Source: Selaginella moellendorffii
Lineage: Eukaryota; Plantae; Lycopodiophyta
Length of the DNA: 64,000 bases
Assembly: GCF_000143415.4 (NCBI RefSeq)
Contig: NW_003314264.1
Span: forward strand, 414,774-478,773
Reading direction: 5' to 3'
Shown here: positions 33,505 to 44,280 of the stretch, in pieces
Numbering within the stretch: position 1 is the stretch's first letter
How the letters are laid out: each line of letters begins with the position of its first letter
Notes under the pieces: model-generated
Told to the model about the DNA's origin: nothing
Seen by the model: only the letters and a program-made list of their open reading frames with translations
Database searches by the model: none
Made by a program: the position numbers and the translations under genes

Positions 33505-35266
33505 ATGCTTCAAAGTACCAGTAAACGGCAGCAGGATCGAGCTCTAGACAATGGCCGAGTGCCGTTTGCTCCTTCGCTCGAGGAGAACACCGGTTCAACG
33601 CAGCTCCGAAGGTCTCGAGTTCGGGAAGTTGCTTCCAGGTACAAACTTGCTCCTAGGAAAACTTCCTTGTCACCGGTTGGAACTTCATCGATTGATCTCG
33701 GCAGCCTGTCTTCTCCATCGTCATCTTCAAGCCAGCGAAGAGCTTCCTCTCGGCCGGACGGTCTGTGGCCTTCGCTCAACAAAGAAGAGAGCAGCAAGGT
33801 CGACGAGAAAGCTGTGCGAAGTAGCAGGAAAAATCTGGAGCAAGCCGAGAATGAGAAGCCTCGGGATAACCTCTTCGAGCAATCCACGACGTCAACGAAA
33901 GCGGTATTTGCTTGTAACAAGCCGGGGGCAATACCGATCTGCAAGAGCGTCAACTTATCTTCGACCAAAACTAAAACTTCTTCCCGAAAGTCGCCCGCAC
34001 CATCTTCTTCTCGAACTCATGCGCCAGCAGCAACCAAAGCATACTCCAATCCCAAATGCATGTCCCTGTCCGTCAATGGAAGCCTTGGATCACCTCAATA
34101 TGTGGTACAGAGATGGTCGGAGTCAGGAGGGAACTTCACGACGAAGAAGAAACCTTCACACAGGAAACTCCTGAGCTCCACCATCACTGGAAACGAAGTC
34201 GACGAAAATCTACACCACCACGAACCAGCTGCTTCTGATTCTACGCCGCTGACAAAAACAACACCGAGCTGTGAAGAGTTCCCTGTTCGTCCACGATCTC
34301 CATTTCGAACTCCATCTCCAGGGAAGTTTCCATCTCCATCAAGAACACTGCCAAGCCCACCAAGCTCGAGACCATCTTCCTCTCACGGAAGCCCCGTAAA
34401 ACGAGCAGCCGCAGAGCAAGACGAGGCTCAACTTCTCAAAGTTCTTCACAACCGCCACCTTCAGTGGCGATTTGTTAATGCTCGCGCTCACGCTGCTCTC
34501 AGCTCCCAGGAAGCAGCCGCTAAGGTACGACCTCTGCGTTCGACTTGTGCTAAATCCTTTATAGTACAGAGATTGCTGTTCAATGCCTGGGCTCGTATCT
34601 GTGACCTTCGTACCGTCGTTGCGATGGATCAGATAAAGTTGGACAAAGCCACAGAGAGCCTTAAGCTTGCGTCAGTCCTTGAATCCCATGTAAGCAGCGG
34701 AGTTTGCCTTGGTCCTTAGTCGTCAGTAAACTTGCAGGAGAAAGGCCTTGAAGAATGGTCCCGGCTGGAAGACAAGCTCTCGACTACACTGGATGAAATG
34801 GTTGGAGCGTTAAATGCCGATGTGCTGCGAGTTCCTCTGTGTCGGGGTGCAAAGGTACGCAGCAAAGTAAATCTTATCAGACGAACTCGTGAATGTTGTC
34901 TTTGCAGGGTGATGCTCTAATAATTTACGGAGCACTTCAGCACGCAAGCCTTATCTTGGAATCCGTCGAAGCATCCACTTATCACTTGCTTCCAAAGGTT
35001 TGTCGTTGCTCCCAAAGTTGCGAAGAATTGTGCGTTGGCCTCTCTTCCGCAGGCTCAAGAGCAAAGCCTTTTAGCACAGGACCTCGCACAGACCGTAGAA
35101 CTCGAGAAAGCATCTGTCCGGGAGTGTAAGCAACTTCTTGAGAGAATCGCGTCTTTGGAGGTGTGCTGCTTTTACTTGATAGCTTCTTGTTGGTCATCCT
35201 CGTTTATAGATCGAGGAGCGAAGTTTGCGAGCGCACGGGATCCAGCTTCAGCAGCGAAGTCCGTAG
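33505..35266 (+). CDS. QWRF-motif protein (AUG8/EDE1/SCO3 family, microtubule-associated), multi-exon
   Basis: REVASRY, Ser/Pro-rich middle, LHNRHLQWRFVNARA, terminal EERSLRAH. An upstream in-frame exon near 33294-33413 may extend the N-terminus. Confidence 0.85.
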
Positions 35267-35352
35267 CTCCGACTGTTTGACAACTCTTTTTGTCACAGCC
35301 ATACACCTGATACTGTACAGCCTATATAGAAATTCATTTCTACCTGGAGGCT

Positions 35353-36394
35353 ATGGCGGTGATGAGCAAGAAGGTAGCTACCACAGCTCCGCTCGTCATC
35401 CTTGGCTTGTGGACAGCAAAGTTGATCTTTGAGCAAGCAGAAGTCTCCATGTCTTCCATAGCTGCTGGCTGCCCGGATTCGGTGACGTACCCTTTCAGGT
35501 CAGTGGATGTCATGTTCTTGGCTACTCACTATTTTCTTTGTCGACAGGTTTGGCAACCACGCCATCGACAGATTTATCTGTGTTCTGGTATTTTTCTTCA
35601 AGACCGCTCTGGACAGTAGCCTCGGACTCTGGATCTCTGGCTACTTGCTTTCCGTCGCCATATCCACCTTTGCTTTCATAGCTGTAGAAGCTTCACGATA
35701 TGGACACGCCTGGCTCCTCAGCCTCACACCAATCTACGCCTTTCTCTTCCAAGTTGGTGGCATTTCTGTTGTCGTTCCGGCCCTCTGGCTCCCCATCTAT
35801 ATCCTTTCGAACGCAGCTGAGAGATCTCCTCGACATGCTTGTGATAAAACAATATCTTCTCACCGTGCAGTACTTATCCAGTTTGCTCTCCTATTCTTTG
35901 AGATTATTTCCGTAGCCATGGTGCTGCCTCTGAAAAATGTGAACAAAGACCTCGCCATCTTCCTCTTTCAATTCGCACCCATAGTTTGTCCAATATTCTG
36001 GCTCCCCATCACCACCACCAAAGACTCCGATCCAGCCAGTGGACACAAGGCCGTGGTCCATCTTCACTTCATGCAAGCTGGTAAAGCAGCCGTCTGGCAC
36101 ATTGTTGCGATCCTGCTCGTGCTGGACGATCCAGAAATTCCGTCCAAAACACTTCAACTCTTGTGGCACCACCCAGGAGACCTTTGGTGCAGCTTCTTCC
36201 TTTTGATAGACTGCCTCGTCCTTTTTGCTGCGATGGTGTACTTGACGGCTGTAGAGGACGGAACTACGGCTGCTCTTTGTATACTGCTTGGAGTGCCTAT
36301 ACTCGGACCAGGAGCCAGTCTGTCGATGTACTTCGCTTACAGGGAGGACAAGTTCCTGGAGACGACCATAAAAACGAAGAATAAGCACCAGTAG
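35353..36394 (+). CDS. Uncharacterised multi-pass membrane protein (~330 aa), motifs reminiscent of fungal CtvD/AurD-type proteins
   Basis: Two exons joined in frame across GT-AG intron 35499-35547; about 8 hydrophobic helices. The CDS is solid, but the family call is from recalled motif patterns only. Confidence 0.75.
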
Positions 36395-36516
36395 TCGGAG
36401 ATAGAACCGCACCCGTTCAAGCGAACCAGACTTGGAGTGAGTCAAGTCGATGTAGTAACCACGTAATAACAGTGTAGCTTATTGTTTGTCCTGCAGACAC
36501 TGACCCGTAATTTTTC

Positions 36517-38789
36517 TTAGTCGACCTCCTCCATTTTGTGGCTGCTGCTTCCACTAGGAGCATGCTCGGCACGCTTCTCAGGAACTGTCGTCGCATCGTG
36601 AAGGTTGAGTCCCAGCTTTAGCATGCGACTGATTCTGGCTCCAAATGCACTTGGATCTTCAAGGCTGAATCCAGATGTCAAGAGCGCCGTCTCAAAAAGC
36701 AGTAGCACCACGTCCCTCACTGCAGTATCCTTCTCGTTTCTGTCTGCTCTGATCCTCAGCGCGTTCATGATCGAGTTGTCGGTATTGATTTCCAGCGTCT
36801 TCTTGCTGGTCATGTAGTTGGACATGCTCGCATCTCGCAAGGCTTGCGCCTTCATGATACGTTCCATGTTTGCTGTCCACCCGTACTCGCCCGTCACAAG
36901 GCAACATGGAGAGCTCACGATGCGGTCGGAGACGACTACTTTCTCCACCTCGTCTCCAAGTATGTTCTTCATAACTTTGCATAGGCGCTCGTACTGTGCT
37001 TTCTTTTGCTCCTTGGCTTTCTTGTCCTCCTCAGTCTCTTCCATTGTGAGGCCCTCCTTGGTGATAGAGACCAGCCTTTTGCCGTCGTATTCCTTAAGTT
37101 GCTTAACGGCGTACTCGTCTATAGCATCAACCATGAAGATGATCTCGTGTCCCTTCTTCTTCAGCTTCTCCAGGAACGGAGAGTTTTGCACGGCGGTCTT
37201 GCTCTCTCCCGTGATGTAATATATCTCCTTCTGCCCGGGCCTCATTCGAGTCATGTAGTCTCTCAAGCTGGTCAACTCGTCCCCGCTCTTGGTCGAGTAA
37301 TATCGCAGGAGCTCGGCCAGCTTCGCTCGGTTCTGAAAGTCTTCGTGGATAGCAAGCTTGATATGTTTGGAGTAGACGTCGTAGAACTTGCGGTACTGCT
37401 CCTTGTTCTCGGCAAGATCTGCAAAGAGCTCCAAGCACTTCCTTGTCAGGTTCTTCTTGACCACTTTAAGAATCTTGTTCTGCTGTAGCATTTCCCGGGA
37501 GATGTTCAGTGGCAAGTCCTCCGAATCGACAATGCCTCGGACAAATCCAAGGTACTCTGGGATCAGCTCCTCGCAATCGTCCATAATGAACACTCTTCGA
37601 ACGTAAAGCTTGATATTGTTCAGTCTCTTCTTCGGATTGAAAACGTCGAAAGGTGCTCGCTTCGGAATGTAGAGCACTGCCTTGAACTGTAGCTGCCCCT
37701 CCACTGAGAAGTGTTTGACAGCCAAGTGATCCTCCCAGTCGTTTGTGAGGATCTTGTAGAAGCTAGCGTACTCCTGTTGAGTGATCTCCGCGGGGTTTCT
37801 CATCCAAATCGGCCTCTGATTATTCACGATCTTCCACTCGTGAGTGTCCTCCTTCCCCTTCCCTTTCTGGGCACCTGAAGTTCCAGAGGCCTTCGAAGTC
37901 CATAGAGAAATTGGATAGTTGATGAATTCTGAGTGTTTCTTGATAAGATCACTCAGCCTCCTCTCTTCGAGATATTCCAGCTGAACCATAGCGAGCCACT
38001 TGTATGAAACAAAAGAACCATCACCACCACCACCATCGCAGTTTCTACCTGGTCGTCTTTGAGATGCAAAATAACTTTGGTGCCACGGCTAAGTTTCTCC
38101 TTCGAAGTGTCCTTTGACACGGTAAAAGAACCTCCCGCTTCGGATTGCCAGACATACTGCTGGTCGTCAGTGTGCTTGCTTACCACAGTGACGCTGTTGG
38201 CAACCAGGAAAGCCGAGTAAAATCCAACACCAAACTGTCCGATGAGCGATATGTCCGCTGCTCCGGCAGCCAAAGCAGCAGCAAAGTCTCTTGTCCCCGA
38301 TTTCGCAATCGTTCCCAGATTGTGGACAAGCTCTGGACATCGAAAGAATCAAATCAGTTCCACATTTTTTTCTACCAAGGAAAAAAGGCGAACTCTCGAG
38401 ACTTGAAATGATCATCAACATGAAATCCAAAAGAAAACGCTCACCACAGCACACAACCGTACCGTATTTTGTCAATCCAATCCCACTGTCGATGATCGAC
38501 AGGGTTTTGTTTGCCTTGTCCGGAACAATGTGAATGAAAAGCTCCGGCTCGTCCTTGAGCTTGTTCTTATCGGTGAGCGATTGGTAGCGAATCTTATCCA
38601 GCGCCTGACGGCAGAGGGCATGAATCCATCAATGAATCTGGCAAAAAAGAAAACGAGAAACAAACGTACGTCCGAGGCATTGCTGATCACCTCCCGCAAG
38701 AAAATCTCCTTGTTGCTGTAGAATGTGTTGACGATGAGGCTGAGCAGCTGATTGATCTCTGCCTGGAACGCGAATTTCTCTGACTCCAT
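36517..38789 (-). CDS. HSP90: Cytosolic heat shock protein 90, divergent (~669 aa, 4 exons)
   Basis: [41 protein letters not shown]-terminal MEEVD. Exons 38789-38670, 38604-38463, 38332-38049, 37980-36517. Confidence 0.96.
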
Positions 38790-39945: not shown

Positions 39946-40530
39946 AGTGCTTACTTTAAGAAACTCTCATATTGTCTACTCGGGGTTTTATTATCAACTC
40001 GCTATCCTTTAGCCATTGCGGTGCCGTAGCCAAACGTTAAAAGAGCAAGTCTCTTGGAGTGTAGGATGATTTTTACACAGAGTTTTGAACTTACATTCTT
40101 CCGTTGCCATGAACTTTTGCAAGTATAATATTCAGCGGGATGGTTTATTTGCTCAACATTATTAATCAAAAGCCTTGGTATGTCTGCTCGAGCTGCTGAT
40201 GATTCTTGTGGAAGTAAAATTGATGCTCTGCTATAGCAACATTCTCATGGACAAAGGAAGGTGATTACTTACGCTACTTCTCCAATCAAATTGTTAAAAG
40301 CATGGGGATTCTGTCCCCGTGATAAACTTGCTCAGACCGAAATCGAAGCAGGAAGCTATGCATGTTTAAGGTTCTGCTCTTGTTTGTGGTTTGGCTAAAC
40401 CTCAACGTAAAAAATTTAGCGGCAGACAAAGCACCACAAAGACTCCAGTGACCACGTGGCAGATTTGGGATATTCGACAGATATGCGCGTTAATAATCTT
40501 AGTGTTTGACCTGACACAGCTATGTATAGG

Positions 40531-41910
40531 ATGATTGAGAGAAGCTCTTCGAGATGGGTGTCGTCGTCGATCAAGAATCCTCTCTCGACATGGTTTCCTC
40601 TCACCCCGATCGATATCCACATGCCACTAATTCACAGCCCTCTGGTCCTCGCATTCTCCTCCCCGGTTCCTGAAGGATTTGTGGCCGATTTGGAGCGCGC
40701 GATCCAGCAGGTGCTGTGCCACTACAGAGATTTAGCTGGGCGGATCCGGAGGAACGAGTCCGGGAAGCTTGGGATCTATCTCAACGACCAGGACGAGGAC
40801 TGCGGCGTCCTCTGGATTGAGGCTTCCACCCAGGAAACGCTTCAGGGTTTTTCGGATCAGGATCTCGCAAAGCTCCACGAGCTGACGCCAATGGCTTCGC
40901 AGGATCCCGTGAACATGGGAATCCCTCTTCTACTCCAGGTATGTTCTCCCGATGTTTCCTTCCATTGGCATACATGTGTGGTGTAGATCACTCGATTCGG
41001 TTGCGGTGGGATCGCACTGGGTTTTGGAGTCAACCATCGTGTCGTCGATTGCAACGCGCTCCCGGAATTTCTCCTCGACCTCGCAAAGTTGACCAGGGGG
41101 GAGCGGTCAATCGAGGAACTCCTGTCCGGGCAGCCCATTGACCGCTCCTGCATGATGCCCCGCCGCCCTCCACGCCCTAGCTTTGACCACTCTGACTACA
41201 CCACCAACATCATCACAATGCTTTCCAGCGACGAGGCCAAGTCGATCGTCACCCGCACGATCCACTTCACCAGAGAGCGTCTCGCGCTCCTCAAGTCCGA
41301 GTGTAACAAAGGTCGCTCCAATCAACCCTTCTCCACGTACGTCTCCCTGTCTGCATACCTCTGGAAGTCAATCACCGCCGCCCGGGAAGTCAACGTCCAG
41401 TCCAAGACGATAATACTGTGCCCGGTCAACGGCCGCCGTGGGCTCGCGCTCCCGGCTCACTTCTTCGGCAATGCGGTGTTTAGGCGGTGCGCATGCGCCA
41501 CGGTTTGCGATATCCTTGCCATGCCCTTGGGTGACTTGGCCTCGCTGATTGCCGCAGGCTTAGAGTCTTTATCGCAGGAGGATTATTTGCGATCGGTTGT
41601 GGATTTCCTTGCATTGAAGCAACAACACGAGGACCAGCAGCGTAGTTCTCCCCAGGCGGAAGAGATTCCCCGCTTTTCTTTCGATCCAAACTTGATCATC
41701 ACTAGCTGGGCTCGACTGCCCTTCTACGAGCTCGACTTTGGATTCGGTCGTCCGGTTCTTGCCACCCCCACGGAGGGCCCTTGCGAAGGTTACGTGCGAG
41801 TGGTGCCATCTAGCAATGGTGACGGAGGTCTAGCAGTAGTGCCCACTCTAAGAAACGCTCATATGGACAAGCTTGTCTACTCCATTTTCAATGACAACAA
41901 AGATGGTTAA
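40531..41910 (+). CDS. BAHD acyltransferase, intact (~443 aa, 2 exons)
   Basis: HxxxD motif (HRVVD), FFGNAV, SWARLPFYELDFGFG. Intron 40939-40986 at the usual Q|IT position. Confidence 0.93.
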
Positions 41911-42038
41911 CACTTTCCATTGATCAGCAATGGACAAGCCTGTCTACTCCACAGATGGTTAGTGAAGGGATCAAATCGCATCGACAAATTGTTAACCTGG
42001 CAGCTCTTCCATTGTTCAGCACAAATTCATTTTCAATC

Positions 42039-43361
42039 ATGGTCATCACGATTGAGCGGTTGCCGGAATGGATCCGGATTCAGAGCGACGACGGGAGCAG
42101 CGATCATTCTCCATGGCTACGTCTCAGCCCGATCGATTCCCTGATGCCAAGCTATCACGTCCCACTCCTCCTTGCATTCTCTTCGAAGCTACGTACCTCT
42201 TCTCGCTTGAAAGATTCGCTCGAAAAGGTGTTGGGCTACTACATGGAGCTCGCGGGTCGGATTGGAAGAGATGAATCTGGGGATCTGGCTATTCGTCTTA
42301 ACAACGAGGGAGTTTTTTGGGTGGAAGCCGTCGCAACGGAAACATTGGTCGAGTTTCTGGGTAGCGATGATGGTCATGGAAATATTCACAAGCTTACACC
42401 CATGTCATCATCGAACAATCTAGATTCAAGCAAGATTTCGATCAGTGAAGTTTACTCGTTCCAGATCACAAGCTTTAGCTGTGGAGGATTTGCGCTGGGG
42501 CTTGGAATCCAGCACCACGCCGCCGATTGCAACGCGGTCCCCGGCTTCCTGGCCGACTGGGCAGCACTCGCGAGCGGCAAAGCCGCGAAGTTTTCGGACA
42601 GTCGCTCGTCCGATCGTACCTTGATGATGCCCCGGGATCCACCCATGCCGGAGTTCGAGCACCCCGAGTACGCGCTCACGCCGAAGCACTACACAGTCCT
42701 CACCCCGGAGGAATCCAAAGCCCTCACCACTCGACGGATCCACTTTCGCAAAGGCGAGCTCGATCGGCTCAAAAACAGTGAAAGCGCTGGAGGATCTAGC
42801 TCCACATTCGTGTGCCTGGCAGTCCATCTCTGGCGGCTCATCACCATGGCCAGGGGAGTCAGCGGCGGCCGCCGCACGGTGCTCTACTGCCCGGTCAATG
42901 GTCGCCGTGGACTCTCACTCCCGGTTGACTACTTTGGCAACGCCGTGTTCCGGGCGCGCTGTGAGGTCAGCGCGGAAGATCTCACGGAGATCCAAAATCC
43001 ATGTCGTAGAAGGGCAATCGAGCCCAGCTTGTGATGACCAAGTTGGGATCGAAGCTGATCCTCGTGAATCCGGCGCTGTCGTGCTGCTCTGATTTGGGAG
43101 CTTCTCTCAGCTGGAGAGCCACGAAATCCACCACCGATCTCAAGCGCTCGGCCTCGGACGCCCTCTCGATACTCGCCGCGATGATCGAAGCTCCAAATTC
43201 CAGTGGGAACTCCAATCCTTGCCACACCCACGAATGGTCCCTGCGAAGGCTACGTCCGTGTTGTTCCATCGGGCCTCCAAGACGGGAGCTTGGAAGCCGT
43301 CGCTACTCTTCGCCAAGAACACATGGAAAACCTACTCGCTTTGATCGAAGCACACAAGTAA
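42039..43361 (+). pseudogene. BAHD acyltransferase disrupted by an internal ~220-bp inversion
   Basis: HHAAD and YFGNAV on the + strand; LRSVVDF...SWARLPFYDMDFG on the - strand at 42990-43209; PCEGYVRVVPS...TAA resumes on + in the original frame. Confidence 0.9.
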
Positions 43362-43409
43362 AAAAATTATCGATAGAGTATAGTGAAACATCCAAAGTCT
43401 TGGATTCGA

Positions 43410-43772
43410 TCACTCATCACCCGAGGGCCGAGTTCTCTTTGAAATATCATAGTTCGTCTTCTCCAAGCTCTCTTCTTCCTCCTCATCCCCATCCTTCTTC
43501 TTCTTCACCCTCTCCTTGTAGCTCTCGTCAGCAACATTGTGCCCGACTTTGCCATACCTTTTCTTCTTGCTATCATCATCCGGTTCTCCTCCACCTTTCG
43601 ATCCGCTCTGGCCACAAAACCATCGCTGCTGCTGCTGCTGATCCAAGCTCCAATTCTGCCCAAACCCAAACTCCAACGAAGAAGAAGACGCGACCAAAGA
43701 ACTCGTGCTACTCGCGCTCTGGCATTGCCCGGACAGGACAAACCTCCTCGTCAAATGGATCAATCGAGACAT
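43410..43772 (-). CDS. Small (120 aa) putative mitochondrion-targeted protein of unknown function
   Basis: ATG-initiated single-exon ORF with an Arg/Ser/Leu-rich acid-free first ~30 aa, an RWFC cleavage-like motif and a highly charged C-half. Confidence 0.6.
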   Translation of the reverse strand: MSRLIHLTRRFVLSGQCQSASSTSSLVASSSSLEFGFGQNWSLDQQQQQRWFCGQSGSKGGGEPDDDSKKKRYGKVGHNVADESYKERVKKKKDGDEEEEESLEKTNYDISKRTRPSGDE

Positions 43773-44280
43773 CGCTCGCTAGATCTAGCCCTAATTTTCG
43801 CTATTTGCTGGCCTTCTCTCTTCTTGCATGGGTGCCAAGTGTGGCTCACTAACTGCACCACCTCATGATCTGGCCACCTGGTAAAAAGACCTTTTACCGT
43901 TAGATTTGCTCTGGATAGGATTCGAACACATAAGGTGCTTATAAAATCCAATTATTTTCTACGACTTGGATACAAACGGTGTATCGAGGCCGATCTTTCG
44001 CCAAAGCCAATTATATTATCTGCTTTGCTTGAAATATTTGCTGGTAAAAATATATCACATGACTCTTACCTCCAAATATATCACCTTGAAAACCCCAACG
44101 TAGACAAATATTCCTCCTGCTACTCGCGCTGTATTCCGTGCGTACTACACCCAATACCAGCATTTTCCACACAACACAGTTGATCCTAGTTTTTGCTTGT
44201 TTTTACTTTGGACATTCCCTTCTCATCGAGCCTGGCTCTCCAAGAGAAGAATCTCTCTTTTACAAAAGCTTTCCCCCTTG

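Follow-up and report, generated by a model that had tools for sequence, protein, structure and literature searches.

The stretch of Selaginella moellendorffii DNA analysed here (64,000 nucleotides, the window) holds, between a QWRF-family gene and a convergent HSP90 gene, a two-exon gene on the plus strand at 35353-36394, whose 330 codons specify a product of 330 amino acids. Its parts are as follows.

35353-35498, plus strand: exon 1, 146 nt, the ATG at 35353 being the first in frame after a TGA at 35308; it encodes the first predicted membrane helix (residues ~8-26) and then a loop with a conserved cysteine, C40
35499-35547, plus strand: intron, 49 nt, GT..AG, phase 2; the junction codon, AGG, is Arg49
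35548-36394, plus strand: exon 2, residues 49-330, with about eight predicted membrane helices and all of the family motifs; the stop codon, TAG, is at 36392-36394

Codon 49 is interrupted by the intron after its second base. Hydropathy places a single hydrophobic segment in the first exon and about eight in the second, for about nine helices in total, and the two-exon reading frame encodes the multi-pass protein of ~330 amino acids described in an earlier note on this DNA. Searches and folding were performed on each exon separately (35353-35496 and 35549-36391) rather than on the joined protein; a full-length residue number, as used below unless otherwise stated, is the exon-2 number plus 49. 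Exon 1 is recognizable in its own right, as its residues 9-48 match the N-terminus of a relative, P0002, with 47.5% identity (E 2.6e-12). Neither exon has a Pfam match even at E 10, a sequence search of the PDB gave none at E 10, and no paralogue is found within the 64-kb window. Neither a word search of 5.8 billion proteins nor an exhaustive search of cluster representatives yielded any protein with at least 50% identity to the product, the window's own included, although spliced contigs of the gene occur in public runs; either public annotation of this genome may lack the gene, or matches of the gene to itself may have been kept out of the results. The GC content of the gene is 0.50, and both this and the size of its intron agree with the neighbourhood.

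33505-35220, plus strand: QWRF-family gene (Pfam E 3.9e-18), its 3′ end within ~150 nt of the ATG at 35353
34853-34905 (53 nt) and 34996-35050 (55 nt), plus strand: the last introns of the QWRF gene, spliced out in contigs of sequencing runs X1 and X2
36517-37989, minus strand: HSP90 gene (Pfam E 1e-213), convergent, its stop codon ~120 nt from the TAG at 36394
40522-40986, 41089-41910 and 41955-43034, plus strand: open reading frame pieces of tandem BAHD acyltransferases ('Transferase', PF02458)

The QWRF family is, as far as known, plant-specific. Loose contig ends at 35160 and 35208 suggest that the QWRF gene has a further intron, of 47 nt. On the other side, unstranded contigs span both the studied gene and HSP90, so that the 3′ ends of the two probably overlap. 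A GDSL lipase gene lies ~3 kb upstream and the BAHD copies ~4-7.5 kb downstream; an open reading frame adjoining the BAHD pieces (43031-43852, plus strand) has no Pfam match, and no oxygenase is present among ten open reading frames scanned from ~31 to 48.7 kb. A biosynthetic cluster, for which the proximity of the lipase and BAHD genes might speak, was dropped as a reading since there is no adjacent oxygenase and the immediate neighbours are the QWRF and HSP90 genes.

Transcripts and variation

Contigs of four public runs (X1, X2, X13 and X9) were compared with window positions 34700-37200. In those of X1, X2 and X13, three runs from three studies, precisely the 49-nt intron is absent, and in those of X1 and X2 the QWRF gene likewise lacks its 53- and 55-nt introns. 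With introns of all three sizes skipped, the contigs derive from RNA and the predicted splice is in use. The seven differences in coding sequence between runs comprise five that are synonymous and two Thr>Ala replacements. What is encoded in the window is an intact, transcribed and spliced plant gene and, since it is expressed, host-like and flanked by plant genes, it is resident in the plant genome.

Contigs of X9, a run with another organism label, retain the 49-nt intron, with A>G at 35524. This run may be DNA-derived, and its source is probably a close relative or a different haplotype. It also has an in-frame GAG insertion at window position 36372, which gives one extra Glu in the C-terminal tail. 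A single low-depth X9 contig is without the 57 nt at 36355-36411, whose ends, CT..AC, read as a GT..AG intron when taken on the minus strand. The skipped segment takes in the TAG that ends the studied gene, and it may correspond to the spliced 3′ UTR of an HSP90 transcript, though the evidence from this contig is weak (side 28, depth 6).

A family across eukaryotes and its conserved residues

Though the protein had been taken for an orphan, an exhaustive phmmer search of 1.84 billion cluster representatives returned 123 proteins at E<=1e-3, 35 of them at <=1e-10 and 6 at <=1e-30, and an orphan it is therefore not. The best match, P0001 (335 aa), has 40% identity with E 4.7e-55 over residues 6-279 of the query, and the second best, P0002 (350 aa), 44% identity; both are aligned end to end. 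Detection depends strongly on the method. A word-index protein search with exon 2 gave no match, though the relatives with 40-44% identity sit in the same collection. With a 55-sequence profile the same type of search gave at least four matches, including one from Monosporascus at E 4.6e-24, and with an Ascomycota member, P0131, it gave 36, none carrying the name AurD, CtvD or AscI, and with the Ascomycota matches entered as 'hypothetical'. The nearest look-alikes by protein language model are large Ascomycota clusters, with scores of 0.94-0.95.

Organism names could be attached to 22 matches through cluster look-ups and the word search, and are distributed as follows.

Streptophyte algae: Spirogloea muscicola (two), Klebsormidium subtile, K. 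nitens
Chlorophyte: Chromochloris zofingiensis
Amoebozoa: Luapelamoeba hula
Oomycete: Achlya hypogyna
Chytrids: Cladochytrium, Rhizophlyctis
Mucoromycota: Rhizomucor, Fennellomyces, Absidia, Jimgerdemannia, Podila, Umbelopsis
Basidiomycota: Mucidula, Termitomyces, Mycena
Ascomycota: many Xylariales and others

No land plant is among these 22, in keeping with the prior remark that no characterized seed-plant family resembles the protein. The best of the organism-labelled matches are those of Spirogloea (E 3.9e-24 and 2.1e-23), ahead of every named fungus, and fungal members have ~25-35% identity to the window protein. The ten best matches overall (P0001-P0010) come from run assemblies and metagenomes without an organism label, and their 90% clusters include no NCBI or UniRef entries. 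One of the ten is an uninterrupted open reading frame on metagenome contigs of 24-51 kb (L001-L003). On another metagenome contig (L006, 1604-3300) a homologue 52% identical to P0001 is split by an intron of ~600 nt, located at approximately exon-2 residue 117-120 and so elsewhere than the intron of the window gene; its two exons have been called as two proteins, which fall in the P0010 and P0006 clusters.

Conservation was scored by column in a 113-sequence family alignment (a 55-member alignment was also made). All the motifs that had been picked out from the window sequence in the earlier note are present in the order given for them, and they do not reflect chance, since every one of them coincides with a column that is conserved in the family.

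35552-35599, plus strand: G-x4-D-x3-C-x4-FF, GNHAIDRFICVLVFFF, in the helix after the intron; D56 in 67% and C60 in 77% of the 113 rows
35684-35698, plus strand: VEASR, at the end of a membrane helix; E96 in 96% and R99 in 88% of rows
35747-35779, plus strand: FQVGGISVVVP, the first part of the next motif
35747-35794, plus strand: FQVGGISVVVPALWLP; G120 in 81%, P126 in 73%, W129 in 88% and P131 in 81% of rows
35966-35980, plus strand: FQFAP; P193 in 82% of rows
36095-36100, plus strand: WH, the H being a conserved family column
36200-36211, plus strand: LLID, inside a long membrane helix; D270 in 88% of rows
36302-36316, plus strand: LGPGA, at the start of the last helix; G302 in 86%, P303 in 89% and G304 in 74% of rows
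36338-36346, plus strand: YRE; R314 in 83% and E315 in 88% of rows

The family signature reads G-x4-D-x-F-x-C-x4-FF / E-S-x-R / L-x-Q-x2-G-I-S-V-x2-P-L-x-W-L-P and continues F-x3-P / H / F-L-x2-D / E-x-G / G-P-G-A-A ... R-E. The most conserved of its columns is the E of VEASR; expressed in exon-2 numbering the leading columns are E47 (96%), P254 (89%) and R50, W80, D221 and E266 (88% each), followed by C11 (77%) and D7 (67%). Every near-invariant residue of the family is retained in the window protein. In an Ascomycota profile, FQVGGISVVVPALWLP is aligned with YQTVGGA.I.PL and FQFAP with WQPAPL. In typical members the corresponding residues are numbered D~61, C~65-66, E~101-106, D~279-310 and E~340-354.

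The structure prediction called for in the earlier note was carried out on exon 2. With the 113-row alignment, AlphaFold2 gave an all-helical model with mean pLDDT 96.3 and pTM 0.93 (from the single sequence alone, pLDDT was 45). Foldseek comparison of the model with the PDB gave no match at E<=0.001, and in an exhaustive VIA-align search the best Z was 5.4, to spectrin-like helical repeats only and well below the value to be expected of a true helical-bundle relative. As modelled, the predicted fold has no solved counterpart in the PDB. The family, ancient, pan-eukaryotic and uncharacterized, is represented in all major fungal groups and most expanded in Ascomycota, and has neither a Pfam model nor a solved structure; membership in it is one component of the joint reading, set out below, to which we incline.

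Descent of the spikemoss copy

A maximum-likelihood tree was built from 92 near-full-length rows, with fragments and long or gappy rows left out. In it the window protein clusters with P0001, P0002 and P0007 (100/100), and the neighbours of this group along the backbone are three clades with named streptophyte algae, an amoebozoan pair and P0003, though backbone support is weak (45/83). A single clade (100/98) takes in all the rows of Mucoromycota and Dikarya and leaves the window protein outside. In AU tests, for both of which the clades were chosen after the tree had been seen, forcing the window group together with Dikarya was rejected (lnL loss 33.4, p 0.0025), whereas placing it with all alga-bearing clades cost 1.2 lnL and was not rejected (p 0.47). 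Because the window protein stands outside the Mucoromycota and Dikarya clade, and in view of the AU results, ancient inheritance is favoured over fungal import. If the joint reading is right in its other respects, it is highly probable that the spikemoss copy was inherited down the green lineage, with no recent import from a fungus.

Two origins had been put forward at the outset, transfer from a fungus to the plant, and an ancient gene lost in seed plants. The latter fits the data. The former, attractive as a story, has to be corrected as unsupported: the tree, as far as its 92 rows reach, speaks against it, as do the streptophyte algae that head the named matches, and this is the kind of outcome that the earlier note had given as refuting a fungal import. 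To be set in favour of horizontal transfer from a fungus into the spikemoss lineage, with the host-type intron gained later, are the richness of the family in fungi, the lack of a land-plant homologue among the organism-labelled matches, the closeness by E-value of chytrid sequences (P0013, 3.9e-19) and the weak backbone, which leaves room for a donor among early-diverging fungi or other eukaryotes. However, the rank of Spirogloea above any named fungus, the exclusion from the well-supported fungal clade, the contrasting outcomes of the two AU tests, the host-like composition and intron size, and the low identity to fungal members all weigh against it, and transfer is accordingly judged very unlikely. 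A still more remote alternative is that the open reading frame is non-functional, being a pseudogene, a mis-assembly or contaminant DNA. The failure of either protein search to find a protein at least 50% identical is what might recommend it, but the intron is correctly spliced and the reading frame stays open across it, three studies have spliced contigs, variation is mostly synonymous, the family-invariant residues have all been kept and there are contigs on which the gene is physically linked to plant genes, so that this alternative is scarcely credible.

Fungal counterparts and possible function

A series of motifs similar to that in fungal polyketide-cluster membrane enzymes (CtvD, AurD and relatives) had been pointed out in the earlier note, with a profile comparison proposed. 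When a profile from the green-lineage side of the family (19 sequences) was compared with a Dikarya profile (15, mostly Ascomycota), they matched with 97.5% probability and E 8.1e-12 over 273 columns, and in register at the D, V-E-A-S-R, Q-x-G-G...P, A-P, H, D, G-P-G and R-E-D columns. Given this, the Monosporascus match and the Ascomycota look-alikes, a profile match to fungal proteins does exist.

Several characterized fungal proteins are pertinent. AscI, a membrane-bound terpene cyclase of the ascofuranone pathway in Acremonium egyptiacum, has eight transmembrane segments and no Pfam motif, and requires D61, E103, D296, E353 and D355 for activity (PMC6486709). AurD and CtvD are 27-29% identical to AscI, with D61, D296 and E353 common to all three (PMC6486709), and have been reported to convert bisepoxides to tetrahydrofuran rings in the membrane. 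In PaxA, D279, called the equivalent of an AscI Asp, is essential by mutation, and a conserved C66 is near the substrate in a model (PMC12038925). Kinship of the present family to AscI, AurD, CtvD and PaxA is indicated indirectly, by residue numbers and descriptions rather than by alignment: the conserved D, C, E, D and E of typical family members, at the numbers given above, agree strikingly in number, though unaligned, with AscI D61, E103, D296 and E353 and with PaxA C66 and D279.

Both AscI and the window protein are multi-pass, of ~330-380 aa and without a Pfam motif, and D56, E96, D270 and E315 of the window protein are on columns numbered near four essential acidic residues of AscI; AscI D355, however, has no conserved counterpart in the family. 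The AscI gene is in a biosynthetic cluster beside a P450 gene, whereas the window gene is not, and is from a plant. Compared with the window protein by description only, AurD, CtvD and AstD are epoxide hydrolases that are bound to the membrane and encoded in fungal clusters for alpha-pyrone polyketides, where they are accompanied by a flavin monooxygenase partner, unlike the window gene with its QWRF and HSP90 flanks. PaxA and IdtA are indole-diterpene cyclases that form tetrahydropyran rings, and their likeness to the family is by residue numbers only, with the Cys of the family D-x3-C motif at ~65-66 to be set beside PaxA C66, and the Asp at ~279-310 beside D279. PaxA belongs to Eurotiomycete clusters and acts on 3',4'-epoxyemindole SB, in contrast to the plant setting of the window gene.

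All things considered, we lean, with rather less than firm conviction, towards a plant-resident gene of an ancient green-lineage family whose product is an acid-catalysed epoxide-opening membrane enzyme. For the specific proposal that the protein works by protonating an epoxide, by analogy with AscI, AurD, CtvD and PaxA, the probability is put at slightly below even. In the putative reaction, a lipophilic substrate within the membrane would have its epoxide opened by acid catalysis, after which attack by an internal hydroxyl would yield an ether ring, or attack by water a diol. The proton relay would be made up of the predicted-buried, near-invariant D56, E96/R99, D270 and R314/E315, as in AscI, AurD/CtvD and PaxA.

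The main competing possibility accepts the same ancient family but has it non-enzymatic with respect to epoxides, its members being transporters, lipid-handling factors or structural membrane proteins, with the likeness to AscI, AurD and CtvD only distant or coincidental. That this likeness is one of residue numbers and not of alignment is in its favour, as are the location of the window gene and the examined Ascomycota members outside biosynthetic clusters, a wide eukaryotic spread suggestive of a core cellular role, and a fold without a solved counterpart to anchor function. Near-invariant buried acidic residues are, however, a pattern typical of catalysis, and here four predicted-buried acidic residues are near-invariant, as are one Arg and one Cys, in a set of over 100 divergent sequences, while the conserved positions coincide, by number, with mutation-tested residues of AscI and PaxA. 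A non-enzymatic role is on these grounds considered unlikely, though appreciably less so than either transfer or a defunct gene, and the epoxide-opening enzyme continues to be the reading preferred.

If the link to AscI, AurD and CtvD is true, membrane epoxide-opening cyclases are a branch of an old eukaryotic family that is represented in green algae and in at least one vascular plant, rather than an oddity of fungal secondary metabolism, and there is a candidate enzyme for the ether rings in lipophilic metabolites of non-seed plants. Structural biologists would also gain a confidently modelled fold without a solved relative. A bolder version, regarded as speculative and improbable, is that the family comprises unrecognized ancient membrane enzymes of eukaryotes, with a fold that the PDB lacks, that open epoxides on endogenous lipophilic molecules. 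AscI, AurD, CtvD and PaxA would then be late recruits, and the spikemoss copy the first land-plant member, making lipids with tetrahydrofuran or tetrahydropyran rings by a route lost in seed plants. Epoxy-terpenoids, sterol or carotenoid epoxides and epoxy fatty acids would be the candidate substrates.

A different sort of resemblance is to Pfam DUF2834 (PF11196), to our knowledge a family without known function. Weak matches to it are present in 8 of the 55 family members (best E 1.3e-4) and by language model the distant look-alikes of the window protein include a DUF2834 cluster (0.80-0.81), but the window protein itself does not match DUF2834 at E<=10.

The surroundings of three Ascomycota members consist of genes of housekeeping type (kinesin, FtsJ, OST3, a choline-transporter-like gene and PDCD2). 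No polyketide synthase is near any of the three, and a gene with FAD-type domains is nearby at only one of these loci. From the housekeeping surroundings and the lack of a polyketide synthase it follows that most family members probably serve an endogenous role, and the cluster enzymes would be specialized offshoots. The homologue in Seiridium cupressi (L015, 10001-11217) is labelled 'FAD binding domain-containing protein' though without such a domain, and it shares with that in Pestalotiopsis fici (L013, 10001-11310) a conserved synteny that includes the choline-transporter-like gene and PDCD2_C.
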